Shown here one piece after another: positions 3,301 to 28,893 of a stretch of 64,000 nt of DNA. Both the position numbers and the translations under genes were made by a program. The DNA lies in assembly GCA_965637545.1 (NCBI GenBank), contig OZ281499.1:1240001-1304000 (forward strand), given 5' to 3'. Source of the DNA: Phallusia mammillata (Eukaryota). How positions within the stretch are numbered: the first letter of the stretch is position 1; each line of letters begins with the position of its first letter. The notes below the pieces were generated by a model that saw nothing but the letters and a program-made list of their open reading frames with translations, ran no database searches and had not been told where the DNA came from.

Positions 3301-6300
3301 TAAGCGTTTTTATTGCTAAATATTTGTAGTTTTTTGAAGACCGGTCCGCGATAAAATTTTAGTTTCAAAACCGGTCCGCAGTGCAAAAAAGGTTGCCGAC
3401 CCCTGATTTAAGGTGAAGTGACACATCATGTATACCTTCTCCATAATCGGTTTACGGAGTTCATTCAGTTTCTAACAACTGATCAAATCATTTCACTATC
3501 AGCTTATAGATTAAGCCAGTGGTTTTCAACTGGTGTTCCGCGGAACACGAGTGCTCCGTGAAAGGTTGTCAGGTGTTCCGCAAGAAATTTAGTAGTTTAA
3601 CTGTTCACTAGTCCATGGAACACCTGTCGAAATTCATTGGTCGTACACAGATTTCCTAAGGAAGTAATTGTTTACTTTGACCAATTTGTATGTCCCATCG
3701 CGATTTGCTTCGTTGCGTAATAGTTAGACTTGTTGTGTAATAATAAGATTGTAGTTGCGTTGGTGTTCCACAAGATTGTTTGATGCATGAAGTGTTCCGC
3801 AGCTCAAAAAAGGTTGAAAAACACTGGATTAAGCAATGCGCTGTATATACTCACAAATTTATTATTTCTTGTTATTTCTCAGCTTGGTGTATTATGGTCT
3901 GACGCTCAACAGTGGAGCTCTAGCTGGTAACATCTTCATCAACAACGCAGCAGGAGGATTGATGGAGCTTATGGCTGCGTTGGTTAGCGGACCAGCCATC
4001 GCGAAGTTCGGATGCAGGAACTCTGTCATATTTTACGAGTTTCTTGCCAGCTTCTCTTGCTTAGTATCAACTATTGCCATCCAGTTTGCTAACTCAAACA
4101 AGGGTAAGTGGTTGAGTTGAGTTTATTTCGCTTGGTGAAAGACAGCATAGCGACACAATTGCACTGAAACAATCACCAAGCCGAAAATAGCTGCGCAACA
4201 TTGAAACGTTATGGGGCACAAAAACAACTGGTGGATAATTGCTGAACGCGCTGCTGCTCCACCTTATTATAAAACGTTATGTGATAGGAGCTTATGGGAG
4301 AGTGAGTTAGGCGCAATGTCAGCAAACTCCAAAAAAACTTGGTGGGATCAGTCCAGGGGCCCCATAAGTACTTTTTAGTGTGACCTGATGTTTAATTAAA
4401 AAACGCTCTTTCATATAATTTAAACTGACAGCCAGTCCGACTATACTAAGTTGTGAGCTGAGTTGCAATCCCGAATGTGCGCGGGTCCAAATCTCACCGC
4501 AGATTTTTTTGCTTTATGGAAAAGCACAGGGTAATGCTTTTGCGGCTAAACTTTTTCTGTCAAAACGGCCAATCTAATGCACATCTTGCATATACCGTTC
4601 ATAAGAATCTCTTTATAAAATCATACAGTAGGTCAGGCTTACGAAAGGCGTGATACCAAATCAAGCCGTGCTTCTAATAAATTGGATGCAAGACTATCTT
4701 GTTATAAGCGTTTTGCATGTTGTAAGCATCATATGTGTCGTACCGTTAGGAAGTATGAACGTTTTGAGCCTCTGTGATATTGATATCAACTCATTTACAC
4801 TGCAACTTATATACGCTCACCCAGTTCTAGTTTGGTCCACAATATATTCCCAATTCAAAAATCTATACATGTTGACAAACTATCACGGCACATTAGTTGT
4901 AAATTGTTTCAAAACATTAACAGATTTTTTTTGGTCAGTATGAACGTTTGAGCCTCTGTGTAATTCATACAAACTCATTTACACTCTTTGCAATTGACAT
5001 GCACTAACGGAGTTCTAGTAAGGTCCACAATATATTACAGAGTCTAAATCCTGTACATGTTGGCCAAATGTTACGGCACATCACTTGTAAAAAATAGTTT
5101 CAAAACAACAAAAGATTTTAAAATATGTTTTTCTTTTTGCAGCTGTCGAGACACTAGGTGTCGTACTTGCGATGATTGGACGATTTGGGATTAGTGCGGC
5201 GTGGGCGGTTATGTACCTTCACACTCCTGCTCTCTTTGCTACTCCTGGAAGGTGAGAACCATTGTATAGTGAACATGATGTGCAACTGTGTAGTATGGAT
5301 ATTGCAATATCACGAATTTAGAGAAACTCAGTATGAGCGGAGGGGACAACAGTCGCAACTTTTGTTGACTGTAAACTTTGATCAGTCTGAAATCATTGAC
5401 CGTTTTTACTATTATTAGGATAGATAGATTTTATCTGATTATTAGACACCTTCTATATCGGAAAATAACAAACAGTTATAAACACAAGGTCAAGCGTACA
5501 CCAGTGAAGTAAGAAGGCTGTAAATATGATGCTGAGCAGAGCAGCTCTAGCAAAGATAATGGTAACGAAACAGTTAGTTAAATGATGTGATCCCTAAAGT
5601 TTGGGCTATGAAGGATTTTCCATATTACCATGAACGGTGCGCCCTTAAATTTTTCTTCAGATAGTTGCACTCTGTAGTTAAAACAATTTGGGAAACACTG
5701 TGTTGAACAAATCCTACTGTGGCCAATCCAGAAAAATGTAAATATGACTTCTATCACCTGCCAGTTCTGGTCGATTGGTCATTGTAAGACCCTGATATAA
5801 CTCATGGTTCTTCAATTTCAGATCGTCAGCGCTTGGAGCGTCGTCAATGGCATCTCGGGTTGGAAGCATCATAACCCCATTCACCCTTCAACTCCAGTAT
5901 AACATACCTTGGTTGACTCAGGTACCTTACAATGTTACTTCTGCTATTTTGATCGCAATTAGAGGCAAATTAACATTTAATACAAATTAACTCGAAGCAT
6001 GTCGCCAGTCAAAATTATATTCCTATCAAAAGTTAAAAAGTGTCAAAGAGCATACTTTGTGACATTCATACAACAGACACTGATCTTATAACCCTTTATT
6101 TTGATCCAACCTCCAATACCAATCCTAACTGCCTGAATTGTGCAGAAATTGTATATTTTTTTGGGGGGAATTCTGAAATCTGGCCCTCAAAGCTAAAAAA
6201 ATTATGAATGTGCATTACTTTCTGACCAATCAGTTTAAAAGCCTTTAGGCCGTCTGTCAGACTTAACAACTTGGCACTAACGTGAAAGATTTTGAGCCTA

Positions 6301-6891: not shown

Positions 6892-8288
6892 AATGATATA
6901 ACCGTTATTGCATTGCCTCAAGCTCCAAGAAGAATTACAAAGTTCATTACTTCAGATATCAATCACTTTAAATTCTTTACCTGACGTATAATTGCAGTTT
7001 GCGCCGAACTTCAGTGGTAATAAATGTTTTAACAAGAAAACGTAGTTGCCCAAACTTTTTATATTTGTGGTCCATCAACACGTGCCCCCACGGTTCACAG
7101 TACATTTTACAGACGAAAAAACACCAAAGTTGCTTTAGGGTCAGCCTTATAACCAAACATTCCGTTTTGGTCGGAACTTTTAAAGCGAGTTCGACGCATC
7201 ATTAGCCATACCTCCACTAAATGTTGGTGCAATGAGTTCTTGTGTTTTGCACTATAGACGTGTACAAGAGATTGTAAAAGCTGTACTCCATTGGAACGTT
7301 GATTTGAGTTAAATTTATTTTGCTTGGTCAAATTTTCTTGTAGAAAATCCATTACCAAGAAAGAAATAGCTGTGCAGCTGTATACGACGCACCTAAGTGT
7401 GTGGGCGCGCGTGTTTCCCGCAATGAATAACAAGCCTTGGACTGACTCTTTACTTGGCTGAGATTCCTGGGCTATGTTATTCTTTGCTTGGATTAAAATT
7501 GTTTTTTCTGTTTCTCATGGTTCGCATCGATCGTTTGCAGTTGCAAGTAAAGTCCATTGTCACGATTCTTAACGCTTGATTGCTGCATAGAGCCGACATG
7601 ATCCAAAAAAGAACGGTGCATTTATTGTATTTTATCCTGGATACGCAACGCATAAAATCTCCTCTATCTCAAGGGATAGAAAAGATAAAAAAAAATGAAC
7701 GATAAGTCGTTGACTTTTAAACCAATACTCTTTGTGCTTGCGGTCGTTGGAAAACATTGCTTTCTTTTACATCAATTATTAGTTTTTTTAAGTTTAAAGC
7801 TCACAAACTACGAAGCACAAAATTTCTGCACCGTTGTATGCACCAGGAAACCGGTAACATGTAACAGTGTGGGAACAATGACACTGAATATGTGCTTCCA
7901 ATAGATACTGAATCATGAGAACACATGGAATAGTAAAGTTACACCGCCCAATGTCATATGTTGCAAACAACACTTCATTGTTATGGGGACAAAAGTCATG
8001 CTAGCAAAGTTAAAATGCTCTTTTAGTTTATATTCAGCCAAACTAATGTGCCAAAACGGTGGTTTGAAAGCAGTTACGTAAAGATCAGTTGGTGGAAAAA
8101 AGTAAACGCACTAAAGTTACATCGTACAAATTAGTAAACTTTTGTACAACTGGTTTAGCGTATTAGCAAATTTTGTAACAGGTAGTGTTTGTAAATAGTT
8201 GTAGGGAAGTATCAACAAAATCAAACTGAATGTTTAAACTGTTTCATGAAAAAACAGGTACAAACCATAAATCCTTTGTTTAACTCAA

Positions 8289-9028: not shown

Positions 9029-11488
9029 TTAGTGTTCACATTTGATATAATACAACAAGCCTTGTTCGTTGCAGGGTGTTGGGTAACCTTGGCCGTTTTT
9101 AATGAGATTGGCCAATGCATGTTCTTTGGAGGTGCTGCTCGATGGCAAATATTTACACGTGTGTGTTTCTCGTGTGTTGATATCTGTGCAAGTTCCGTGA
9201 TAAACCCATTTGGATTTGAAACCTCTCCATCTCCATCTGCCTTTGCTAATGCATTCGATTTCATGTGATCCGTAATAAATCTGAAAACACAAAACAAAGT
9301 AGAATTGCCTGATTATATTTGTTATTGTTTTTGTTGTCATTTGTTTTAGTAGTTCATTCTATGTTCTTAACGTTAATTTAGTATTGTAACATATCTGGCT
9401 AGATGGCCCAATAAGTAACACAATGTTTCATGAAAGACAAAAACCTAGTTTTCTGTTCAAGAATAAGATTTCTAAACTGCTATGGTCAATTTTGTTTGCA
9501 AAATTTTACCTACTTTTTCTGACAAATCAGTGTAAGTGACGAGTTTGTTCCAGTCAATAGTTCGACATTCCGGTCCTGCAGTGCAAGGTGGACATTCACA
9601 AACCGGAAGTTTATCTGACCACTGCTTCGATGCCAGACACGTCACTTTGGCAGGTCCCTAAGAAAAAGTTGAATAAATTTACTGATGTGCAAGTGGTTCT
9701 TAAAACTTCAAATCTCCTAATACGGTCTAAATATTAAATATCGAAAATAGGCAATCTAAGTTTGTTCACACAAAAGTTTTGTTAAACCTGAACCGTTGCC
9801 AAGTGATAGAGCTATTGGTTATGTGTATACGTCTTGCTGCGCAAATTCGTAAGTCCAAAACTGAACTAATACATGTAGTGAAGTAAAGCACATACTTTAA
9901 AACAAATTGAACTAAAAATGTAAGACCCAAATGGATTTAAATGATAACCCACTCTAGGACAGTGACCTAGTGATTGGGCACTTTGCTGCAATGAGTGAAA
10001 AATGTTGAAAGTTGCTGTAGGCTACAGTCGGCGAATAAGGTTGTAGTACAGAATTGTAGTTTTGGCTTCACACTTCTAAAATACACTGACCTACTGACAT
10101 ATATAGCGTTTAAATTTCACTTTTACCTGCGTAAGTTTTCCTTTGAAACAAGAAAAAGTACAGTTGGATCCGATTTTATTTTGATTTGTGCAATAAACTT
10201 CTCTATTGGGAATTTGCTTTATGGAAGCACATTCTGCAAAACAAAATTGTTTTGGTGAAACGGGTTTTGGTAAATGTTAGGCTTTTTAAATGGTAAACGC
10301 TTACCACCGGTTTCATTTTGTTTCATCCTCGTCAAAACTACTGCGAGAATTATACCAATAATTGCGACCACCACCACTGCCACTGAGCCCACAATAATAC
10401 GGCACTTTCTTTTTGCTGCTTTGGGTGACTCTGAAACACATTATAACTTTGAGACAACACTATCCGACGTATTTAAACTAAAAATTAAAAATGGCAGAAA
10501 AATATTGCAATTTTACTTTTTTATTTAATTCAGCTATTTTTTCATCTTTGCATTTATCAAGAAATGTCGGCGAGACAACGCAACATCGAGTCCGTAACGT
10601 TAAAAGTTAGTTGGTAATTATTCAGTTAACATGACAAATAACCAAAATGTGGTTTACCATGCTGAATATTGACATCTCCACCAGCGGTGTTATATGACAT
10701 GTCATTAATAATTGGATCCTTATAATTTGAAACCCATGTGGTCGATTCGTTTGCACCTGTGGACAAATTAATATTTAATTATGCAGTGATGTTTTGTTTC
10801 GTCGTTGTTTCAATATTGCAGAAATATTTTGATTAAAAATATTCAACTGGTTTGCTGTTCACCTTTTTGGGTCATTTATCAAAGCATTTTGCTGATACAA
10901 CGCAATAACAAGTTAGATATCTAACGGTTATTTCTGATTGTACATCAAAATATGTCAGATCACCAAAACATATGTTTTTGTTTACCATAATTGTTGACAT
11001 CTCCACCATTGCCGTAAACTGACGTTCTGCCCTTAAATTTTGAATGGGTTAAATTCGAAACTGCTGATGCTTTAGGCACCAATGTGGTCGGCTCACTCGA
11101 GCCTGTGAAAAAAAACTCCAATCAGAAATGTTATATTTCGGCATTGTTATAATATCGGCCTTCGATCTCGTTTCCATTTTTCGCTATCTAACACCTTCTA
11201 CCTATTTGTACTATTACCTCATCATAAGCTTGTTTGCTGTATATTGACATGCGATGTAAAGAATATGTTCACTAAGAGCCTAAAAAGGGAGCTTTAAAGC
11301 CAATATTAAAACACCGACCCTATTTTCAAACCAAGCCCAGCCAAGCAGTAGTAGCTCAGACAGTCAAGGACGTAAAGTGTAAAATATATTTAGCAAAAGA
11401 TAGCTCTACAGTAATAAGTACGACGTTAACCCAATACCTACTCGTACAATTTGAAATACTTACTCGTATTTGAAGCACCATCAGCCAT
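9029..11488 (-). CDS. Array copy 1: type II membrane protein (tail motifs x2 - TM - Sushi - Cys-rich ALF-like domain), 289 aa, intact
   Basis: Exons (minus) 11488-11464, 11102-10986, 10756-10658, 10430-10305, 10233-10127, 9657-9514, 9280-9029; all GT-AG, phases compatible, total 870 nt. Protein: MADGASNT..VYGNGGDVNNY..YNTAGGDVNIQH..KRKCRIIVGSVAVVVVAIIGIILAVVL..ECASIKQIPNREVYC..GSNCTFSCFKG..GPAKVTC..QWSDKLPVCEC..CISKGRWRWRGFKSKWVYHGTC..IKCEH*. Confidence 0.9.
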
Positions 11489-11984
11489 GATTATCAACCT
11501 GAACTAACATTGAGTTCACACTTGCATGAAACTGACAGCCTAAATTTGCACAAAGCACAGAAAAAAAGCAAAATATTGGCTCTGTTATGGGTAGTAAAAA
11601 CTAAAAACGCACAGAAAACTACTAAGTTGCACATCTGCTATATAAGACTTTTTCTTTCTCGTTTACACTCTTTGATTTCGAAAATAAAATTTCTTGTCAA
11701 AGTTTTTAACACACTAAAATCACACATCTTTGAACATTTATTTCTACCTATATTTGCCCGTTAAAGCTGGACGTAAATAAGAATTTAAATAGCATTAGGG
11801 CAGTTGATGCAAATCCTACAAAGCGAATACACTTAATAGTAAAACGTCATTTTTCTATTTCTACGTCGACTACTTGATGCATTACGGACTGCACATCATT
11901 ATCATAATCATTAGTGCTGTGGTCATAATGATTCTTGTGATGTTCGTTTATTTTAATCGGAAATGATGACGCGTCAAACACGCT

Positions 11985-12847
11985 GGTAAACGCTGCAAGC
12001 ATTGTGTTATTCCAAAACAGGTGTTCTGGTTTCCAGAAAGTGCTTCATACAATGGCATCATGATTCGCGCTGCACCAGGAAGAAATCAGTGATAAAAATT
12101 TATCATGCCAGCAAATTCTTGTAGGCCTTTAATAGTGGTGGGTTTGGGAAAACTTTGAATTGTCTTGACTTTGTCAGGTAATGGTCTTGCATCTAATCTA
12201 TCCACAAAGTGTCCTAAATAATTCGATTCCATCTGTCCGAACTTACACTTGGCTAGTAATGACAAGGTGGTGCTGGACAGGGACTTGGCCGACGGTCCGG
12301 CGCGCCTGACCCGCACACAGACATAAAAAACCTGATCGAGATTCGTTCCCGGGTGCGTCCTGGTTCGAAACTCCTAAAAAATGAAAAGTTCGTGGTGAGC
12401 CAGTTGTTTGAAAAGCTGATGAAGATGTTTGCGATGTTCTTCAGATTATTTACTTGCAACGAATATGACATCAAGATAAACGAAGACGAATTTCAAAGGT
12501 TTACACACTGTATCCATGATTATTTGAAACGCTTACCCTGCATTTTTACGTCCAAACGGCATGCGAAACTCAAAAATCCCGAACGGCGTTACGACGACGG
12601 TTTTGGAATGATTGAGGTCGATTTTAGACAAAATCTTAGCCCCTGCCAGTCGTGCTGTAAAATCCTGGATATGTGGGATCGAGTAACGGTCTGGTTGTGT
12701 TGCTGCATTAAGGCGCCTGTAATCGCCACAGGGGCGCCATCCACCTGATGTTTTGGGAACCATATGAAGTGGAGACGACCATGGACTGGATGAACGGCGG
12801 ACTATTCCCAACTCCATCATTTTAGAAGTCGTCTTTCTGTTGGACAT
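11985..12847 (-). mobile_element. Decayed Ty3/gypsy reverse transcriptase fragment (frameshifts, stop, YLDD changed to YLDV), interrupted by a short retroposon
   Basis: Translations GIVRRSSSPWSSPLHMVPK..WRPCGDYRRLN..LSKIDL..MPFG..YLDV..KCKFG..YLGH..F.GMINFY are gypsy RT motifs spread over shifting frames. Confidence 0.92.
12267..12379 (+). mobile_element. Short SINE-like retroposon inserted into the gypsy RT; second copy at about 29300-29385
   Basis: Flanked by a near-perfect 9-bp duplication, AATGACAAG (12258-12266) / AATGAAAAG (12380-12388). Shares ACAGACATAA.AAACCTGATCG.GATTCGT.CCCGGG..GTCCTGG(G)TTCGAA plus an A-rich tail with the 29300 copy. Confidence 0.6.
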
Positions 12848-13874
12848 GACTTGATTGCATTTAGGCGAGTAGCCGCTTGGTCTCTCTTACGTATGGCCAT
12901 GCTAGGTAACGACTGAGAAATAAATATCAAGAGAATATTAAGCCGGTCTGAGATTTTGTCCCTTGTGGTTCATTCTTGTTTCAAAGTCGTATGGTGAAAA
13001 AACACTGGTTTTGTTTGGCCGAAACATTTTGATCAAATACCCAGTTTCGATGATGGTTTAGGTTCATATTTCCAAAATTCGACCGAAACCAAACTTTGTG
13101 TGGGTTTGAAATCAATGCTTCACAATTAACCTTTTAAAAATTCGTAAATTGCTGCTTTTTCCAAGAACAGTGTTTCCCAAAATTTTCATCTTTGCGCCTC
13201 ATCAACCAGTTAACTTTTAGTTTAGTACACAATACACATTACAGGCAAGAAAACACAAAATAGTCTTTAGGATTCATTCCTTAGTCAAATATTTAACTTT
13301 TAGGGCAGTTCGGTGCATCGATCACTATAGGACCATACCTCCAAATAAATATGCTGTTGCTGCCTGGCATAATGTATTAACAAATATGTAGCTCCAGGAG
13401 TTTTTATTGAATTTATAAAAACTACTGGAATAGCTACATTTTTGTTAATAACTTTAAATGTTATTGTAAAACGTACCTCTAAATGTGTTTTTTTGCGTGT
13501 TTTTTTTTTGCAAAATAGACGTTACAAGAGATTATAAGTACTTGCCTCCACGGGAACGTTGATTTAAGGTGAATTTATTTTGCTTCGTCTAATTTTCAAT
13601 GCAAACCAAAAGCAGAAAATCAATCACCAAACAAGGGATAGCCGCGCAGCTATATAGGCTACAAGGCAACTGAGCGCAAGGATAAGTTGATTTAAAAAGA
13701 TTAAATTCGCTAAAGCTACAGCTACAGCTAAGTCATGCACATTTTATATCAACAATAGCACACTTTTCAACATGTGCTTTAGCATTTTAGCAATGTTTGC
13801 AACAAAAAGTGTTTATAAACAGTTCAGGAAGTATAAACAACATCAATTTTGAAACACATTCTTCAACTGTTCGT

Positions 13875-16800
13875 TCAGTTATCACATTTGATATAATACA
13901 ACATGCCCTGTTCGTTGCAAGGCGTTGGATAACCTTGGCCATTTTGAATGAGATTGGCCAACGCGCGTTTTTTTGAAGTATTGCTTCCTAGCCAGTTTTT
14001 ACACGTGTGTGTTTCTCGTGTGTTGATATCTGTACAAGTTCCTTGATAAACCCATTTGGTATGAAAACCTCTCCACTTTATCCTGCCTTTGCTGATGCAC
14101 TCGATTTCGTGCGACCCGTAATAAATCTGAAAACACAAAAAAACGACGTTTAACCATACGGTAGTGAACAAAACAATGTAGAATTGGCTTGGTATACATG
14201 TTAATGTTTTGCTTCAAATTTTTCTGATTGTCTTTGTTGAACCTTTAAGTTCACGAACCTTTTCTGGGAAATCAGTGTAAGTGACGAGTTTGTTCCAGTC
14301 AATGGTTCGACATTCCGGTCCTGCAGTGCAAGGTGGACATTCACAAACCGGAAGTGCATCCGACCACTGCTTTGATGCCAGACACGTCACTTTGGCAGGT
14401 CCCTAAGAAAAAGTTTATTAAACCAACTGATATGCAAATGCTTGTGAAAATTTTGCGACGGTCCAAAAACTAAACTATGATGGGCAAACTAAGTTTGTTC
14501 CCACAAAGTTCTACAAAACCTGAACTCTTGCCAAGTCATGAAGCTATTGGTCAAGTCTTTACGTTTTGCTGCACAAATTTGTAAGCCCAAACTTTAAACA
14601 AATATGTGCAATGAAGTAAAGCACACAATTATCAATTAGTATTGTAAACTAAAAATAAACCTAAACGGAATTAAATGATGATCAACTTTTGGCAGCGACC
14701 CAGTGGTTGAGAAGTGTTTTGAATGAAACAACGACACAACAAGCCCACAGCTACAAGACACTTCGAATGTCGGTAAAGGTTAAACTCACGCTTTTATATG
14801 GGCATGCGACAAGGTCGTCACAAGGCGGGGCAATATACTTAATGCGTCACAAGGTGGCGCAACATACATTACAAGAAGCACTTTGCTAGAGTGGGTGAAA
14901 ATGTTTCACGGTTGCCATACAGAAAATGAATAGGTTGTAGTGCAGAATAGAAGTTTTAGATTCACATATCCGACGCACACTGTGTCTCGGCAATATGTGG
15001 AAGTTTCACTTTTACCTGAATAATATGTCCTTTGTTACAAGAAAAAGTGCAAACAGACCCGACAACATTTTTATTTGTGCAGTAATCTTCTCTATTAGCA
15101 AATTGCTGTATGGAAGCACACTCTGCAAAACAAAATTGTTTGGATGAAATGAGTTAAATATAAACATCACGGCTTTTATATAATAAACGGTTACCACTAG
15201 GGATGGCCCGATAGTACTGTATCGGCGCCGATACCCGATGCTTCGAGCAGTATCGGTACTCGTCCGATACTTTAGCGGTATCGGTACAAGTACCGATACT
15301 TTTTTTGAGACTTTATCATGTGTAAAATTGAAAATGAAAGGAGGCAAAAAACAACAACCATCGGCTGTGATAAAATATTTATGGGACTACAACTAAAAAA
15401 CGCGTTCGTTTTGGATTTAATGAAATATGATGACCTAAATCGCTACAGCGACTTAATGACGTAACACGTTTTTTAGGCCCGCGTTAATTGCGAGCGAGCG
15501 TCACAACGCACAAAGTTCATTGTAGACGTTTGTAAGCATAAGTTTCGAAACGGCAGGTGTTTAATTTGTATGGCCAAGTGTATTTAGACATTCCTAGTGT
15601 TATCAGTGACAAATTATTATATGCCGTTAGGTGAACTTTTAAATCCCAATTAAACTACCTGCGATTTTGCAATACAAAAGTTGGCGTTAAGAAATGACCC
15701 AAACGTCATATGTTTTTGGATTCCTTCACTGGGGATATTAACAGACAATCCCATTCTCTGCCTAAAGCCATGATCGTTAAATGTTTTTGTTGTCAAAGTC
15801 GTAAAACATTAACGCCGGTAAGACGTTACAAACAATAGACGCCGGTAAGACGTTGCAAAGCGCGTAGCATAAACGTAATCACGTGATCAGATGCGTAACA
15901 ACTAGTGCACCAATCGTTAGTTATGCCTCCAATGCACCACCGTCGTTAGGGCATCGTTAGCTCGCCAGCTGATTTGCCAAAGAGTCTTTACCAGACCTGG
16001 GCATTTTACGGCCTTAAGTGATTTATTAGACTGAGTGTGTTGTTAAATTAACTGTGATGGGAAAACACATTACAAATACATCAGTTTGAAAATGTTTTTG
16101 CTTGTTTGCAAAGTATCGGGTATCGGTATCGGATCGCAGTACTTTTGGGGTAAAATATCGGGTATCGGTATCGGTTCAAAATATTGGTATCGGGCCAACC
16201 CTAGTTACCACCGGTTTCAGTTTGTTTCTTGGTGGTCGAAATTACTGTGGGAGTAACAGTGGCGACCACTGAATTTGTTGTCTCAACGGTGTTAGTGATA
16301 GAAGTATATTCTGCAAAACAAATTGTTTGAAGAAATAAGTTTAGGTAAATATCGAACCACACAAATGGCTCTAACGCTTACCACCAGTTTCAGTTGGTTT
16401 TCTGAGGGCCGAAACTATTGCAAGAAGTATACCAGTAAAGACAAGCACTCCCAATACCACTGCCACAACGCCCACAAAAGTACGGCGCTTTTTGTCAGCT
16501 GGGTCTGAAACGTATTATACTGTTAAGACGACACAACCCGAAATATTTCATTAAAAATGAAAAAAAGACAGAAATATGTTGCTATTTTCTCTTTCTGTTT
16601 GGTCATTTATTAAGGAATGTTACCGAGAAAATGCAACTCATATCTGAGTCAGATATGTAACGTATAAAGTTATATCAACATTATTCACCAAGAAGTGCTT
16701 TGTTGCCGTCTTCACTATTGTTGCCATCTGACGCGTCCTTCAATTGTGACTCGTTGGAATTTGGAACTACTGTTGTTTCGGGCAACAATGCGGCCGAATC

Positions 16801-18100: not shown

Positions 18101-18599
18101 TCGTATTAATTTGTCTACAGTCGCATCTACAATTTGACGTGCAAATAGAATAGATTGGGCGAGCAAATGTCGGATGACGTTGAAAAAGATCATAAATACT
18201 TGACTACATGAGAACGTTAATTCGATTTGAATGGATTATAATTAGTCAAATTATTGATGCAAATCAATTAGAGTAACGTCTATAACTACACGCCCGCTTA
18301 GTTCATGTCTAGCCCATCTACAACCCTTACTTAGTCCTCTTCTTAGATCCGCTTAGGACTGAATGTCGCTTCAGTGGCTGCGCAGCTATATTTTTAAATA
18401 TACAAGGCAACTAAGCGTAAAGAACAAAGGGAGGAAATAATTAAACGCACTTAAAGCGACATCGTATAAATGTCACATCAGTAGATTTTTACCAGCGATT
18501 GGGCAAAGTTTGTTTACGATTGTTTAGGGAAAACAAAATCAAAGTGGGATTCACAATCTTCAACTCTTTGTTCAGTTTCCACAACTCTTTGCCAACGCG

Positions 18600-19700
18600 T
18601 GTTTTTTGGAGGTGCTGCTCAATGACAAAAAAGAAAGAAAAAGCTGCGCAACTATATACGACGCAACCAAGTGTGTGGACGCGCGTGGTTTCCGCAATGA
18701 ATAACAAAGCCTTGGACTGACTCTTACAATGGAAATGTTCTCCTGCGTCAGCTGAGCTTTTTTAGCTATGTTATTCTTTACTCAAAAGCTTTGTGTTAAT
18801 TTTACTGCTTCTCGTGGTTCGTTTCGGTCGTCTGCAGTAGCGAGTAAAGTCCATTGTCACGATTCTTAACGCTTGATTGCTGCATAGAGCCGACATGATC
18901 CAAAAAAGAACAGTGCATTTATAGTATTTTATTCTGGTTACGCAACGCATAAAATCTCCTATATCTCAAGGAATAGAAAAAAAAACAAGATCAACGATAA
19001 AACCTTGACTTTTAAACTGATGCACTTGCGGTCGTTGGAAAAGATTGCTTTCCGTTTACTCACATCAATTATTAGTTTTTTTTAAGTTTAAAGCTGGCAA
19101 ACTACCAAGCACAAAATATCTGCCCCAGTGTATGCATCAGGAAACCGGGAACACGTAACGTTGTGGGAACACGGACACTGAATATGGACTTCCAATAGAT
19201 ACTGAATCATGAGAACACATGGAATAGTAAAGTTACACCGCTTAATATCATATGTCGCAAAAACAACATACAATTTTCATGGGAACGAAAAGTTATGCTT
19301 GCAAAGTTAAAACTTTTATTTAGTATAGGTTCAGCCACACCAATGTGCCAAAATGAAGGTTTTACCGCTACGAGCGTAAGAGCAGTGGGTGAAAACAGGA
19401 GTAAACGCGCTGAAGTTACATCGTATAAATTGGTAAATCTTTGTACAACTGGTTTAGCATATTAGCATAGCTTGTAACAAAGAGTGTTTATGAATAGTTT
19501 TAAGGAAATATCAACAAAATCAAAGTAAACATTTAGACCGTTTCATAACAAACAGGTACACAGCAACAATATTTTCTTTAAATCAACAAGAATATATATT
19601 TAGTCTTATAAACAAGCATCATCAGTTTTTGGAAAAGCAAACATTTCTGAAAAAGCAAACAAAATAAATTGCTAAAATTTTCTTTTTACATTCTATTTTC
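18600..19700. repeat. Segmental duplication of 7250-8290 (3' flank shared by array copies 1 and 3; partly also at 13500-13860)
   Basis: Long near-identical blocks, e.g. GTAAAGTCCATTGTCACGATTCTTAACGCTTGATTGCTGCATAGAGCCGACATGATCCAAAAAAGAAC at about 7546 and 18843. Confidence 0.9.
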
Positions 19701-19761: not shown

Positions 19762-21550
19762 TCAGTTTTCGCATTTGATATAATACAACAAGCCTTGTTC
19801 GTTGCAAGCTGTTGGGTAACCTTGGCCATTTTTGATGAGATTGGCCAACGCGTGTTTTTTGGAAGAACTGCTTGATGGTAAATATTTACACGTGTGTGTG
19901 TCTCGTGTGTTGATGTCAGTGCAAGTTCCATGGTAAACCCATTTGAAACCACGTACCCTTCCTTTGCTGGTGCAATCTATTTCGTGTGCTCCGTAATAAA
20001 TCTAAAAAATGAAAAACAATGTGTACGTTTGGTTTTGTTAGTGTTTATTTTGTCATGGAATGTAGGACCTGAAAATTATGATACCACTGTATTAAGGTGG
20101 CCTAATAAGTAATAAAACCAACATTTCTGAGTTGTTGTGGTTGATTTCGTTTAAATAATTTCCCCTACCGTTTCAGACCTATCAGTGTAAGTGACAAGTT
20201 TGTTCCAGTCAATGGTTCGACATTCCGGTCCCGCAGTGAAAGGTGGACATTCACAAACCGGAAGTACATCCAACCACTGCTTCGATGCAAGACACGTCAC
20301 TTTGACAGGTCCCTATGGAGTCAAACAAGTTTGTGAGACATTTGAAGTGACCAGAGCTGCGATTCTCAACCTTTTACGATCAAACCTGACGCATGCAAAT
20401 TCTGATGAGCCTCCAACGTGGAAGTTTAGTTTCAGTTGCACCTGCGCAAGATTTCCTTTGATGCAGGAAAAAGTGCAATTAGACCCGACGACATTTTTAT
20501 TTCTGCAATAAACTTCTCTGTCTGGCATCTCTTGTATGGAAGCACATTCTACAAATTATGAAAATAGTTTTGGGTACATATCAAAGCATTTTAGATGATA
20601 AACACTTACCACGGTTTCAGTTTGTTTTCTGGTAGTCAAAATGACTGTTGGAGTAACGATAACGACCACTACGATTAAGCCAAGAATAATGAAGAGCTTT
20701 TTGTGAGCTGGCTTGCATGTCCCGGGAACGTATAAAGTTCAATATTATATCAGACATATAACGATTTAAATTCCTTTGACAACCAAACACCACATTTTGC
20801 AAATGCATATGGACATCCGAATCTTTTTTGTTCAATATCATAACACACACATGATGCTTTAAACTCCTTTGATAACACCACATTTAACAACGCGTATATT
20901 GTCAATCCTAACCAGGGTAAGTGTTATTGACGTCTCCCGCTGCGTTGTAAACTGACGAGTTTTCAAACCTTGATTCACTGAAGCTTACTTGTACTCCACT
21001 TTTGGAAAAAATCATTCAATTAGATGATACAAATCAGTGTTCTAGCTGTTTTTACGATATTGTTCATCAATGACAATTGGATAAAGTGGCAATGCAAATA
21101 TAATTTTGACTTGATTTGACTTGACAAATAAAGCGAAAACACTTATGAGAACATGATATGCCATTATCCTGACGAAGGCGTTTCACATGGGGAATCGAAA
21201 CGTCGGTTGTTTATAACAAACAAAAATCTCCCGAAAGAGCAATGTTATACTTTACAAACAGCTTCTTTATTTAAAAACAACTTAAAACCAAGGATTTCAA
21301 CTTAGAGTTAGAATAAAACTGTCTTGATTCCTCAAGCTTGACTTCGTAATCGGGCATATTTGTGATGTAATTTCGCTCAGTTTCAAACCTGATTCGGCCT
21401 TATACTCTTTCGTGTTCGAGCTCCAATTTAAGTCCCCGCTAACAACTGGTTCAATCGACTTCGATGAGTAAATAAGAAATTAATTTGTCACAGAATTACT
21501 GCAGTTCCACTTCCTTACTTGTATATAGAAGCAATATGATCTTCTGTCAT
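19762..21550 (-). pseudogene. Array copy 3: all exons open except the TM exon (acceptor AG changed to CG, plus a 1-nt deletion); pseudogene or TM-skipped isoform
   Basis: Exons (minus) 21550-21519, 20998-20913, [20722-20610 broken TM exon, 113 nt vs 114 nt in copy 4], 20548-20442, 20312-20169, 20001-19762. Shortened loop CTSKGRVRGFKWVYHGTC; one Cys changed to Phe in CPPFTAGPEC. Confidence 0.8.
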
Positions 21551-22749: not shown

Positions 22750-25618
22750 ATGGCTGATGGTGTTCCAAATACAAGTAAGTAATTAAGCTCAGACATGTAA
22801 GCTACTGCTTGGTTGGGTATAGTTCAGTGGTTCTCAACCTTTTATGCACCGTTGCCCCCTAAAAAAAATTTCGGGCCTCGTGGCCCATGATCTATCTGGA
22901 CACTTTTATGCCAAAAATATACATTAAAATGGACAAATAGTGTGAAAAATATTCGGTTAAATAAGGAAATTGAATCATTTGTAACACACACTTAACATTG
23001 AGCAATATGAAAGAAAATGTTTCACTGACGTTTGGTGGATGTTTCTAGTGAGCCTACACCCTTGGCGCCCCAGAATACAGCTTATGCCCCACCCCACCCC
23101 CCTAGGGTGCCATGGGCTCTGGTTGGATACCACTGCTCTGGTTTGTAAATGTGGACGGCGTTTTAACATTGGCTTTAAAGCTCCCTCATTATAATGCTCT
23201 ATAGAGTCTGAGTAAACGTAGCCTTTACATCGCGTGTGAATACAGTACATAGTCGGCAAAGTAACAGTACTAATATACAGAAGGTGTTAGATAGTGACAA
23301 AGATAAAGATACAATGACGAAATAAAACTTAACTGCTTAATTTCATCAATTTTTTCACAGGCTCAAATGAGTCAACCAGATTGCTGCCAAAAACACCAGC
23401 CAATTCAAAATTTAAGGGCAGAACGTCAGTTTACGGCAATGGTGGAGATGTCAACATTCATGGTAAACAAAACATATGTTGTGGTGATCTGATATATTTT
23501 GATAAACAATTACAAAAAAACTTTAACTTTAAACCTACATGTCAGACTTGACATATATTGATGTTACTTTGACTCAGCGAAATGTTTTGATGAATGATTA
23601 AAAAATATCAACAATATGAAAAAATGAAAATTTTAAATTTAAACGTCTGTCTTATGTTTGTTTTTTTATCAAACATGTCGAATTGTATTGTCTCAACGTA
23701 AAAATGCAATATTTGTATCTTATTAAACTGACCCAAATTTCTTTTTTCCGCGACAGACCGGACCTCACTGCCACCAAATGTAGGATTAACTTTCAACGGT
23801 ACAAATAATGATGGCGCGTGGTTCAACGCCGCTGGAAGAGATCTCAATATTGGTAAATTTCAAACAAATGTTTTGATAAGTTGACAGTAAACAGGTTGAC
23901 AACAATATGATGTGTATTGGGTTATATATTACGTGTAAAATTATTGTATTCCTGTCAACATGTTAAACAAAATATGTCTCTACGTAACTTTATGTTTCAG
24001 AGACATGCAAGCCAGCTCACAAAAAGCTCTTAGTTATTCTTGGCTTAATCGTAGTGGTGGTTATTGTTACTCCAACAGTTATTTTGACCACCAGGAAACC
24101 AACTGAAACCGGTGGTAAGTGTTAACCAAATCTATTTTTTATCTAAATCTATTTTACCCAAATAATTTTGTTTTGCAGAATGTGCTTCTATAAAGCAGAT
24201 TCCAAATAGAGATGTTTACTGCACAAATAAAAACGTCGTCGGGTCCGTTTGCACTTTTTCTTGCATTAAAGGAAATCTTACTAAGGTGAAACTAAATATC
24301 TGTGCGTACAAAGTGTGTAATACTTTGTTGCGTAGAACTGAACACTCCAATGATCTTTATGGATCTGTCAGCCAGACTGGTGCATTTATAAATCTTAAAA
24401 CAGATTATTTATGTTAAAAAATATGGCATGCGATATGCAATGGCTCGTAAAATGCAAAGATTTGCTCAACAAAGTTTGTTTCGTTGTCTATGACAATTTT
24501 TTCTGTCCGATTTGGGGGTCCATGTCGATGGCAACCCTGATAATAACTCAAACAAGTTAGATGACCAACTGGTTGACATGTGCAAACTTCAAGGCAGGCA
24601 AAGGTGCTTGTGATTCGACTTTCGACGATCAGCCAGTGCATAGATTATGTGGTAGGAAGCGAGTCTCGGAAAAGTTTCTGTCATGGGTTCGAGTCCCACT
24701 GCAGACCAGATTTTTTTTACTTATATACCTTACTAAATGGGAATGCTTGGTTTCCAGATAAATCTTTTTTACGCCTTCATTGGGCCTGGTTTACTGTGGT
24801 TTAAACATGTTCGTTTCCAAAGGGACCTGCCAAAGTGACGTGTTTAGCATCGAAGCAGTGGTCGGATAAACTTCCGGTTTGTGAATGTCCACCGTGCACT
24901 GCAGGACCGGAATGTCGAACCATTGACTGGAACAAACTCGTTACTTACACTGATTTATCAGAAAAAGTGGGTAAAAAAAGCCAATGGTCAAAACATTTTT
25001 TTCGCCATACCGAACAATTGTTATAGGTATAGAATATGTTAGAGTTATAAGCAGTGGTGGGATTCAGCCGGTTCGCACCGGTGCTATAGAACCTTCTCAC
25101 GAAATTTTATGAGATCAGCGAACCGGTTAGCATTACTGGTTACTATCAACTGACTTTTTGTAACAGAACCGGCTGGCAAATACGACTTTTGTGATAGAAC
25201 CGGCTGACAAAAAATTTGAATTTCACCACTGGAGTTAAGTAAAAAAAATCTCTGAAAGATTCCGTTACTGCTGGGTTAATGTTACTGTTTTTTTTTGTGT
25301 TTTTGATGACAAAACAACACCAATAAAGTTATTTAGTCAGTTCTACATATTGTTTTCCGTTTCCAGATTTATTACGGATCACACGAAATCGAATGCATCA
25401 GCAATGGCAGGTGGAGATGGAGAGGTTTCAAATCAGAATGGGTTTACGATGGAACTTGTACAGACATTAATACACGAGAGACACAACTCTGCAAGGATTT
25501 GGAGTCTGGTGACGGTGCAAAGCAACACGCGTTGGCCAATCTCATTAAAAAGGGCAAAGGTTACCCAACACCCTGTGGCAAAGAAAACTGGCTAGGAAAT
25601 TTGAGTTGTGATCAATGA
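22750..25618 (+). CDS. Array copy 4: type II membrane protein, 279 aa, intact
   Basis: Exons 22750-22774, 23361-23462, 23757-23852, 24001-24114, 24179-24285, 24823-24966, 25367-25618; 840 nt in frame. Protein: MADGVPNTSSNESTRLL..VYGNGGDVNIH..WFNAAGRDLNI..KKLLVILGLIVVVVIVTPTVIL..Sushi..CISNGRWRWRGFKSEWVYDGTC..LSCDQ*. Confidence 0.92.
22825..23135. mobile_element. Old or composite hAT-type MITE in intron 1 of copy 4
   Basis: CAGTGGTTCTCAACC start and GGTTGGATACCACTG end; no clean TSD. Confidence 0.45.
24570..24730 (+). mobile_element. Degenerate copy of the tRNA-containing repeat (same family as 63016-63615)
   Basis: TGACATGTGCA...GTGATTCGACTTTCGACG...GGGTTCGAGTCCCACTGCAG..AGATTTTTTT matches the reverse complement of about 63440-63580; a more decayed copy lies at about 4430-4515. 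Confidence 0.75.
25052..25231. mobile_element. hAT MITE (CAGTGGTGGGATTC family), inverted relative to the 6565 copy
   Basis: TIRs CAGTGGTGGGATTC / GAATTTCACCACTG; body matches the 6565-6744 copy. Confidence 0.85.
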
Positions 25619-26848: not shown

Positions 26849-28893
26849 ATGACTGATGGTGCAATTAATGCAGGTAGGCGCGTTAAGTTGTTTGAGTTAT
26901 TTAAACAAACAAAGTCAACTTTGCTAACAAGCCGAACTTTGTCCTTGTTCTCAATAACCTTGTTGAATCAACTGTGTACTCTCGAAGTTTTAAATTTGTT
27001 TCGCAAACATGCAAAAGACCAAAAAAATCTGAGTCTGTAGTTGTGTGTAAAACATACGTTTCGACAAGTGCTATTGTCATCATCAGGTCATTTTATCTCC
27101 GTTTAATTGCTTTTACCTTTTACTTCGTCTTGACCTTTTTTATCGTTGTGCGGCACCCAGTAGCATGCCTTCTGTTGACTTTAATTCTAAAAACCTGTTG
27201 ATGACAATAGCATTTGTCAAAACGCAGTATTGTTTTATACGCAAATACTGGCTTTAATTTTTTTGCTCAGATTATTTAAAAGTTTGAATAGTGTACCTTA
27301 TATTAGAAAATATACGAAAATCACAAGACAGTGGAAGATCAAAATAAAAATTTGCAGTAGCTAACATGATATAAAACAACTGTTTGTTTTGGTGGATGTT
27401 AAAGTATTTGTTTAGTGTTGAAATCGTGCATGCAAGTGTTTAAAGAGCCTCATGCAGCTAATGAAACACAAACTGACAACCGCTAAATTACATCAAGAGA
27501 GAGTATAGTTGGTATTGAATGATTGATTGACTAGGAGTTTTTTTTTGCGACAGAACCGGACGAGACGACTCCATTGCAAGCAAGTTTCAACAAATCGGAA
27601 ATTAAAGACAGTTTATTTCACTTTGCTGGAAGAGACATCAATATTGGTAAACCACACAGCATTTTGCTAAGTTGACATGTTTTGTTAAACAATTACAATG
27701 TATGCATTTCAAAGAATTTCTGTCACAATGCTTAAGTAAGCACTTAAGTAAGTACGTCGTGTTGCCTCAAATTAAGTAATTTTACGTCTTAGGACCATGC
27801 AAGCCAGTTCACCAAAAGCTCTTTATTACTCTGGGCATACTGGCAGTGGTCGCCATCGTTACTCCAACAGTAATTTTGACCACCAAGAAACAAACTCCCC
27901 CCGTTGGTAAGGCTTTGTCGTTACATGGTTTCATGTTAAACCCGTTATAACAATTTTGTTTCGCAGAATGTGCGTCCATAAAGCAGATTCCGAATAGAGA
28001 GGTTTATTGCACAAATAAAAATGTCGTCGGATCAATTTGCACTTTTTCTTGCAATACGGGAAATCTTACAAATGTAAGACATATGGCATATAAAAGTACA
28101 TTTCGACTTTGTGTTCTTTTTGGGGCCTGCCCAAATAACCCTGACTCAACCACATCAAATGTCTCACAAGCTTGTTTGATTTCCATAGGGACCTGCCAAA
28201 GTGACGTGTCTGGCATCGAAGCAGTGGTCGGATAAACTTCCGGTTTGTGAATGTCCACCTTGCACTGCAGGACCAGAATGTCGAACCATTGACTGGAAAA
28301 AACTCGTCACTTATACCGATAAATCCGAAACGGTTGGAGAAATTGTTTAATTAAGATGTATTGAGTCGTTCTACTGAGACACCTAGTTTAACGTTACTTG
28401 TGTATTTTAAAACCAAAGTAGTTCCATCAGAAAACATGGGTAGATGAAAAATACCTTGGACACGTCCAAGAAATATCAACATTACCTTGGAAGTAAAATA
28501 AATGGGCTTACATTTTTCTTGTTAGTATTTGGAACATTGAAACAAATTTTTACCGGCTTTGTGTTATGAGCCGTTTGCCTAAAGACAAATCAATCCCTCA
28601 TATTTTATTTTATAATTTAATAAACTATTTTGTCCTGTCAGATTTATTACGCTTCACACGAAATAGAATGCAACAGTGAACCCAGGGTAAAATGGAAAGG
28701 TGTCAAGACTGAATGGGTTTACGATGGAACTTGTACGGATGTGAACACACGAGAAACACAACTATGCAAAGGTTTGAATTCAAGTGGAGGTTCAAAAGAA
28801 CACGCGTTGGCCAATCTCATTAAAAAGGGAAAAGATTACCCAACGCCATGTAACGAACAAAACTGGAAGGAAGATTTGGATTGCGATGAATGA
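26849..28893 (+). CDS. Array copy 5: type II membrane protein, 244 aa, intact, one tail motif
   Basis: Exons 26849-26873, 27554-27646, 27793-27906, 27967-28073, 28189-28332, 28642-28893; 735 nt in frame. Protein: MTDGAINA..FHFAGRDINI..KLFITLGILAVVAIVTPTVIL..Sushi..CNSEPRVKWKGVKTEWVYDGTC..LDCDE*. Confidence 0.92.

Follow-up and report, generated by a model that had tools for sequence, protein, structure and literature searches.

Gene organization and protein architecture

The 64,000-nucleotide region of the tunicate Phallusia mammillata analyzed here (contig OZ281499.1, positions 1,240,001 to 1,304,000; the whole region is referred to as the window) is AT-rich, intron-bearing eukaryotic DNA with a GC content of about 37% and carries an array of five related genes. 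The last exon of the first of them, gene 1, encodes the greater part of a cysteine-rich domain, the relationships of which are the subject of this study. The reading that we favor, with moderate confidence, is that this exon specifies the core portion of a cysteine-rich domain remotely related to the anti-lipopolysaccharide factor (ALF)/scygonadin family (PF11630), situated at the extracellular tip of a type II Sushi protein, and that this domain would bind polyanions by analogy with ALFs.

Gene 1 was modeled from sequence alone as seven exons on the minus strand, with GT-AG boundaries at every intron and an uninterrupted reading frame for a protein of 289 residues (Table 1). The predicted protein consists of a 91-residue N-terminal tail, a transmembrane (TM) helix (residues 92 to 110), one Sushi domain, and a 110-residue cysteine-rich C-terminal domain. 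No N-terminal signal peptide is present, and the basic stretch KAAKRKCR preceding the TM helix gives the protein a signal-anchor (type II) orientation. The spliced 57-residue Sushi segment scored 36.2 bits against PF00084 (cutoff, 20.7 bits; E value, 7.9e-9) over profile positions 1 to 56 of 56 and has the four-cysteine framework and the conserved tryptophan, so that it can be assigned to this family by score and by sequence signature. Eight cysteines follow the last Sushi cysteine. The membrane tether, the Sushi domain, and the number of cysteines downstream of it, all of which had been proposed in an initial annotation of this DNA, were thus recovered in the seven-exon model.

The C-terminal domain is assembled from two exons, which are joined in phase 0 via a GTAGGT donor across the intron at 9281 to 9513. 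The last exon of gene 1 (copy 1) translates as IYYGSHEIEC-ISKGRWRWRGFKSKWVYHGT-CTDINTRETHTCKYLPSSSTSKEHALANLIKNGQGYPTPCNEQGLLYYIKCEH; downstream of the second loop cysteine come TDINTR, the segment SKEHALANLIKNG, and two further cysteines, and the residues EH close the exon. The loop itself, CISKGRWRWRGFKSKWVYHGTC, has 20 residues between its cysteines, among them six lysines or arginines, five aromatic residues, and no aspartate or glutamate. At the other end of the protein, the 91-residue tail carries two GGDVN-type motifs. The two cytoplasmic-tail exons of gene 1 and one of copy 4 each end in such a motif (NGGDVNNYG, AGGDVNIQH, and NGGDVNIHG were seen), and all of them are in phase 1. From these exons, the cytoplasmic tail looks modular, with one exon per unit.

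The last exon was found five times in the window by tblastn, with Sushi exons upstream in each copy, and the last exons of copies 2 to 5 are 64% to 89% identical to that of copy 1. The net loop charge decreases from copy 1 to copy 5 (+6, +5, +4, +2, and +1), and copy 3 has two residues fewer on each hairpin strand than the other four copies. The loop described in the initial annotation (C-x20-C, six basic residues, and no acidic residue) is therefore exact for copy 1 but is not a constant trait of the array, as copy 3 has C-x16-C and the charge falls to +1 in copy 5. The variable parts of the domain are the hairpin, the loop at residues 44 to 50, and the C-terminal tail, and the core is conserved. 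Summed over all pairs of last exons, the ratio of nonsynonymous to synonymous substitution rates (dN/dS) among the paralogues was 0.28 overall, with values of 0.31 for the hairpin and 0.16 for the core; the last exon is therefore constrained at the protein level and is under purifying selection among the paralogues. In copy 3, ECPPFTAGPEC (within 20172 to 20252, minus strand) replaces the ECPPCTAGPEC of the other four copies, so that the cysteine count of the domain is odd. A pseudogene array was ruled out by the intact reading frames and the overall dN/dS, the missing cysteine of copy 3 notwithstanding.

Table 1. Exons of gene 1 and of its paralogues in the window
Feature	Position	Strand	Remarks
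Gene 1, last exon	9029-9280	-	Coding part 9280-9032, after ttttcag (AG) acceptor; TAA stop at 9031-9029; ALF-like core with predicted strands b1 to b4, C-x20-C hairpin, helix SKEHALANLIK, and tail with two cysteines
Gene 1, exon	9514-9657	-	Second Sushi half, followed by CPPCTAGPEC and DWNKLVTYTDLSEK (N-terminal part of the domain; counterpart of ALF helix 1)
Gene 1, exon	10127-10233	-	First Sushi half
Gene 1, TM exon	10305-10430	-	KAAKRKCR ahead of helix IIVGSVAVVVVAIIGIILA; mean hydropathy, 3.15
Gene 1, cytoplasmic-tail exon	10658-10756	-	Motif AGGDVNIQH
Gene 1, cytoplasmic-tail exon	10986-11102	-	Motif NGGDVNNYG
Gene 1, putative first coding exon	11464-11488	-	MADGASNT; GTAAGT donor at end
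Copy 2, last exon	13878-14126	-	C-x20-C; loop charge, +5
Copy 2, exon	14259-14402	-	Second Sushi half and CPPC segment
Copy 3, last exon	19765-20001	-	C-x16-C; hairpin 2 + 2 residues shorter; gapless hairpin alignment to family B
Copy 3, exon	20172-20312	-	Second Sushi half and CPPF (phenylalanine in place of one CPPC cysteine)
Copy 4, cytoplasmic-tail exon	23357-23464	+	GGDVN-type motif
Copy 4, exon	24823-24966	+	Second Sushi half and CPPC segment
Copy 4, last exon	25367-25615	+	C-x20-C; loop net charge, +2
Copy 5, exon	28189-28329	+	Second Sushi half and CPPC segment
Copy 5, last exon	28642-28890	+	C-x20-C; loop net charge, +1; whole exon net charge, -4

Predicted structure of the C-terminal domain

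The main AlphaFold2 run was made with the spliced 111-residue domain and an alignment of 20 sequences (A7) that contained no ALF. It gave a predicted local distance difference test score (pLDDT) of 72.2 and a predicted template modeling score of 0.65, with block means of 82 to 89 over residues 31 to 90. An earlier run with the last exon only and five sequences had given a pLDDT of 47 and at most a hint of a hairpin. The predicted elements are a helix (residues 16 to 19), four strands (27 to 31, 34 to 47, 50 to 61, and 66 to 73), and two helices (76 to 90 and 100 to 106). The ALF fold comprises three helices and a four-stranded sheet (PMC6213531), and the order of the elements in the model is exactly that of ALF.

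Of the helix-like segment that the initial annotation had placed ahead of the loop, the model retains just four residues, predicted with low confidence. The loop cysteines (Cys38 and Cys59 in model numbering) are located directly opposite each other in the hairpin that strands 34 to 47 and 50 to 61 form around the G48-F49 turn. This geometry fits a disulfide, and we infer that the two residues are bonded. The initial annotation had named a fold without a cysteine-closed hairpin in a sheet/helix sandwich as an outcome speaking against an ALF-like domain, and this is not the fold that was predicted.

When the model was compared with PDB structures by Foldseek, no match had an E value of 1e-3 or lower. 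The shrimp ALF structure 2JOB (ALFPm3) was number 20 by E value and had the best TM-score among the 50 matches listed (0.46/0.49 over 97 columns). Judging from these ranks and TM-scores, the predicted fold is compatible with ALF and spans almost the whole ALF chain, yet the score alone cannot separate it from a generic two-layer arrangement like that of double-stranded RNA-binding domains (dsRBDs). The dsRBD-like folds (dsRNA-binding domains and the ribosomal uS5 N-domain) differ from the window domain in showing no detectable sequence similarity to it, in aligning over 57 to 75 residues compared with 80 for 2JOB, and in lacking a fourth strand and a third helix. Domains of this type are intracellular RNA binders without disulfides. 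Homology to dsRBDs was ruled out by the missing sequence signal together with the extracellular, disulfide-rich nature of the window domain.

Relatives of the domain and the link to PF11630

When a five-copy profile was run exhaustively with HMMER over 1.84 billion representatives, seven proteins were recovered. Three of these (P0001, P0002, and P0004), which are Big_2, SRCR, and fn3 repeat proteins, were dropped as accumulation artifacts of their repeats; the retained matches were P0003 (E value, 1e-5), P0005 (6e-5), P0006 (3.6e-4), and P0007 (7.3e-4). The search yielded no close relative in annotated proteomes, and coverage of the family in public protein data is therefore very sparse. The four retained proteins and the window copies have the pattern WxY..T.TD...GA.EHA..L in common. 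We here use the name family B for the unnamed metagenome and transcriptome proteins P0003 and P0006 to P0013, whose repeat unit (in P0003, P0007, and P0008 to P0013) has the form GRxIHYKA..WRYKATATD..GAVEHAV..GIIPPP.

The window clade and family B were aligned by hhalign with a probability of 95.4% to 95.5% (E values, 1.4e-8 to 2e-8). A hidden Markov model (HMM) built from family B only and run over the 758 open reading frames (ORFs) of the window placed the five copies as the top five (E values, 5e-5 to 0.02; next ORF, 0.86), and copy 3 was aligned to it without a gap from strand 1 to the helix. On the ALF side, PF11630 (Anti-lipopolysaccharide factor/Scygonadin; gathering score, 25) matched P0003 with 30.7 bits (E value, 3.6e-7), covering profile positions 21 to 90 of 100, that is, the whole core, and P0007 with 43.8 bits. 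Single family B repeats matched PF11630 on their own in 5 of 13 cases (best E value, 2.6e-6), and practically no other family was matched. A set of 48 decapod ALFs, retrieved by using the ALFPm3 sequence (Table S1, PMC6213531) as the query, was aligned by hhalign with family B (74% to 78%; E value, about 2e-5; 67 to 68 columns) and with a merged window-plus-B profile (71.5%; E value, 3.6e-5; 69 columns). Control alignments made from reversed and 40 column-shuffled ALF alignments had scores of at most 18.5, compared with 33 for the real alignment, and probabilities of at most 3.5%. The motif at the start of helix 2 can be followed through all three groups, reading SGAVEHATRDFV in group A ALFs (Table S1, PMC6213531), GKGAVEHAVEAL in family B, and SKEHALANLIK in the window. 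Profiles thus connect the window domain to PF11630 through intermediates, and the view that it is a remote homologue of PF11630 and not a member of the family is largely supported by these comparisons.

Family B proteins are the nearest relatives outside the window clade, with which they share the WxY..T.TD pattern, the third strand, and the helix GA.EHA..L. They differ in being built of tandem repeats with GIIPPPP linkers (at least two in P0003, which is apparently cut at its N terminus, and five in P0007), in having no Sushi domain, no CPPC segment, and few or no cysteines, and in that the hairpin cysteine pair, where present, is C-x12-C. P0007 (L005:45-1847; JGI sample 3300013056) has 600 amino acids; a basic stretch and a hydrophobic helix (VLFAGIGAIVVIAALSSALAY) open the sequence, and the five ALF-like repeats follow. 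It is thus apparently also a type II protein with its ALF-like units outside the cell and would add a second, independent example of such an ectodomain carried by a type II anchor. Among the family B-like sequences, the cysteine-free P0006 (L001:5932-6213, plus strand) comes closest to the window exon, with 49% identity across the matched part. It forms the terminal ORF segment on a 562-kb eukaryote-like contig (45% GC) from an ENA metagenome assembly.

A JGI metagenome contig carries the gene to which P0005 belongs as the last exon; this gene shares the CPPC exon, has a TM exon upstream, and encodes a C-x16-C hairpin. The gene on JGI24022J15233_10002927 (L002/L003; also L004) shares with gene 1 the two-exon domain, in which an exon with QCPPCTTGENC and a helix precedes the last exon, as well as the cysteine framework and the upstream TM exon, and it is 38% to 40% identical to the window exon. 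It differs in its C-x16-C hairpin, two extra cysteines, and the lack of a recognized Sushi exon. In L002, the exons are located at 5572 to 5718 (TM), 7141 to 7224 (CPPC and helix), and 7962 to 8195 (last exon), all on the plus strand, with no recognizable Sushi exon between them, and for this reason the Sushi domain may be an addition specific to the lineage of the window. A metagenome scan for further relatives gave only the two sister contigs already in hand, and protein atlas feature searches gave only unnamed clusters, all below 0.9.

Arguments for and against ALF homology

A number of observations weigh against placing the domain with ALFs. In the Pfam scan, the last exons of copies 1, 2, 4, and 5 had no match at an E value of 10 or lower and thus did not attain the PF11630 gathering score of 25 bits; the five-copy profile had no match among PDB sequences; hhalign gave only 0.3% to 0.5% when the window clade was compared with 21 or 48 decapod ALFs; and an HMM built from ALFs only did not single out the five copies among the 758 ORFs. 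The window domain has eight cysteines compared with two in ALF, and its hairpin cysteines (C10 and C31 in exon numbering) are located two residues inside the ALF cysteine positions on each strand. Helix 1 and the CPPC segment were predicted with low confidence (pLDDT, 41 to 60). The hairpins of copies 4 and 5 are near neutral, which weakens a general polyanion-binding role. Finally, no run on record as RNA contained the locus, and contigs from four RNA runs (four studies) of the species did not cover the exons; these results bear on expression and splicing and are no proof of silence. Searches of PDB sequences with single family B repeats likewise gave no ALF match, and the mixed profile A2 had 2job_A (shrimp ALFPm3) as its top match among PDB sequences with a nonsignificant E value of 0.83. 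Since all direct sequence tests were negative, the ALF assignment rests on the intermediate sequences.

The missing direct signal between the window and ALF would suit a different explanation, namely, that a lineage-specific disulfide-rich domain unrelated to ALF has converged on a dsRBD-like alpha/beta two-layer arrangement with a basic hairpin and that the chain through family B consists of weak similarities. The hhalign probability of just 74% to 78% between family B and ALF points in the same direction, as do the position of the window-to-B match, mainly in the second half of the domain (residues 23 to 69), and one B-to-ALF alignment that covers the first half only. However, PF11630 matches P0003 over the whole core (positions 21 to 90; E value, 3.6e-7) and above the curated cutoff, five repeats match it separately, and the alignment of family B with the 48 ALFs extends over 67 to 69 columns and is far above the shuffled controls. 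In addition, copy 3 is gapless against family B from strand 1 to the helix, the EHA motif lies 20 residues after the end of the hairpin in all three groups, and the order of secondary structure elements is identical to that of ALF. We therefore regard such convergence as improbable and retain remote homology to PF11630 as the preferred assignment.

The register of the hairpin was the same in three alignments (family B with ALF, the merged profile with ALF, and family B with window copy 3). The first ALF cysteine is aligned with the isoleucine of the family B GRxI and with I8 of the window, and the second ALF cysteine is aligned with the invariant aspartate of family B and with D33 of the window; each of the latter three residues precedes the glutamate of the (V)EHA motif by exactly 20 residues. 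All copies except copy 3 have a hairpin four residues longer than that of ALF, and these 2 + 2 extra residues near the turn bring the spacing of the cysteines, which are predicted to be paired two residues further in on each strand, back to 20. Copy 3 and the metagenome relative have C-x16-C (the ancestral hairpin length), and the cysteine-bearing members of family B have C-x12-C. Because the window cysteines lie inside the ALF positions on a longer hairpin, the exact C-x20-C match with ALF, which the initial annotation had used as an argument for an ALF-like loop, is probably coincidental and not itself evidence. The hairpin looks homologous across the groups, and in each of them it would be stapled at different rungs. 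A cysteine-on-cysteine alignment of the window and ALF loops was rejected, as it gave 1 identity in 20 and broke the 20-residue spacing to the EHA motif.

ALFs appear to be exclusive to marine chelicerates and crustaceans, their precursors consist of a leader sequence and a small secreted mature peptide of about 98 to 105 amino acids, and relatives with three and four cysteines have been kept out of the authentic ALFs (PMC6213531). One rotifer gene has been listed with an automatic PF11630 annotation (PMC12220480), and general reviews were all that a literature search combining ALF with tunicates brought up. The window domain has several features in common with ALF (PF11630; 2JOB, ALFPm3): the predicted order of a helix, four antiparallel strands, and two helices; a long central beta-hairpin rich in lysine, arginine, and aromatic residues that is closed by a disulfide (here predicted); the motif at the start of helix 2 (SGAVEHA in group A and SKEHA in the window); and an intron between the helix 1 segment and the sheet, which is the position of the first intron in ALF genes. 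In contrast to the secreted ALF peptide of about 100 residues with its leader, the window domain is the C-terminal part of a 289-residue type II Sushi protein. Gene 1 also lacks the second intron, so that the strands and both C-terminal helices are encoded by a single exon, and it does not have the three-exon structure of ALF genes (leader and helix 1, four strands, and two C-terminal helices). With neither a leader nor a small secreted product, with eight cysteines, and with no match at the PF11630 gathering score and no three-exon gene, the protein falls outside ALF sensu stricto. What stands of the ALF-like identity proposed in the initial annotation is the remote link through family B to PF11630, but not a direct sequence match or membership among ALFs. 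The most fitting place for the domain is in a wider PF11630-like superfamily, as a new variant that is membrane anchored and fused to a Sushi domain.

Putative function

As a remote ALF relative, the domain would fold as a four-stranded sheet backed by helices and would display a long disulfide-stapled beta-hairpin, on the strands of which arginine or lysine alternates with tryptophan or tyrosine (R-W-R-W-R on one strand). By analogy with ALF, this hairpin could be the ligand-binding surface for anionic microbial amphiphiles, such as lipopolysaccharide (LPS)/lipid A and lipoteichoic acid, or for other cell-surface polyanions. The Sushi domain would serve as a stalk, and the motif-bearing cytoplasmic tail could relay a signal. 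Ligand preference may be tuned from one paralogue to the next by the length of the hairpin and by its charge, which ranges from +6 to +1.

Given the near-neutral hairpins in copies 4 and 5 and an architecture that is receptor-like, a recognition role other than LPS binding is also conceivable. The ALF-superfamily fold may have been redeployed, for example, as the tip of a polymorphic self/non-self, cell-cell, or gamete recognition receptor in which the hairpin contacts a protein or a glycan. Variation concentrated in the hairpin, in the loop at residues 44 to 50, and in the C-terminal tail over a conserved core is consistent with this idea, as is the loss of most of the positive loop charge in copies 4 (+2) and 5 (+1; net charge of the whole exon, -4). 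A long cytoplasmic tail with repeated motifs, combined with a Sushi domain, is likewise receptor-like and unlike a secreted antimicrobial peptide, and the five genes form an array with both orientations. However, copies 1 to 3 retain an ALF type of hairpin, strongly cationic and rich in aromatic residues, the hairpin dN/dS of 0.31 gives no sign of the diversifying selection expected at recognition loci, and there is no known partner. We consider this redeployment possible but doubtful and continue to favor an ALF-related, polyanion-binding tip.

Few invertebrate LPS binders have been studied as well as ALFs, which also serve as templates for anti-endotoxin peptides. If the homology holds, a tunicate relative that is membrane anchored, mounted on a Sushi domain, and encoded by five genes would extend the range of the ALF family to chordates, and the ALF fold would be used as a receptor ectodomain and not solely as a soluble effector. 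For structure-activity studies, the array would provide natural hairpins that differ in length, charge, and disulfide register, and family B suggests a much larger, unexplored superfamily. A broader and, in our view, unlikely proposal is that the ALF fold is an old eukaryotic module that in this tunicate forms the ectodomain of signaling type II receptors, which would sense LPS or microbial polyanions by a route unrelated to TLR4/MD-2/CD14.

Other elements in the array

Two short blastn matches to the gene 1 last exon (84% to 86% identity) and a tblastn match with TSKKHALA were located between copies 2 and 3 at positions 18534 to 18629, and this segment has the look of a decayed sixth last exon. 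Between genes 1 and 2 (positions 11951 to 12886, minus strand), open segments with the reverse-transcriptase-like motifs SSPWSSPLHMVPK and GGWRPCGDYRRLN were found, which probably represent a fragment of a long terminal repeat retrotransposon.

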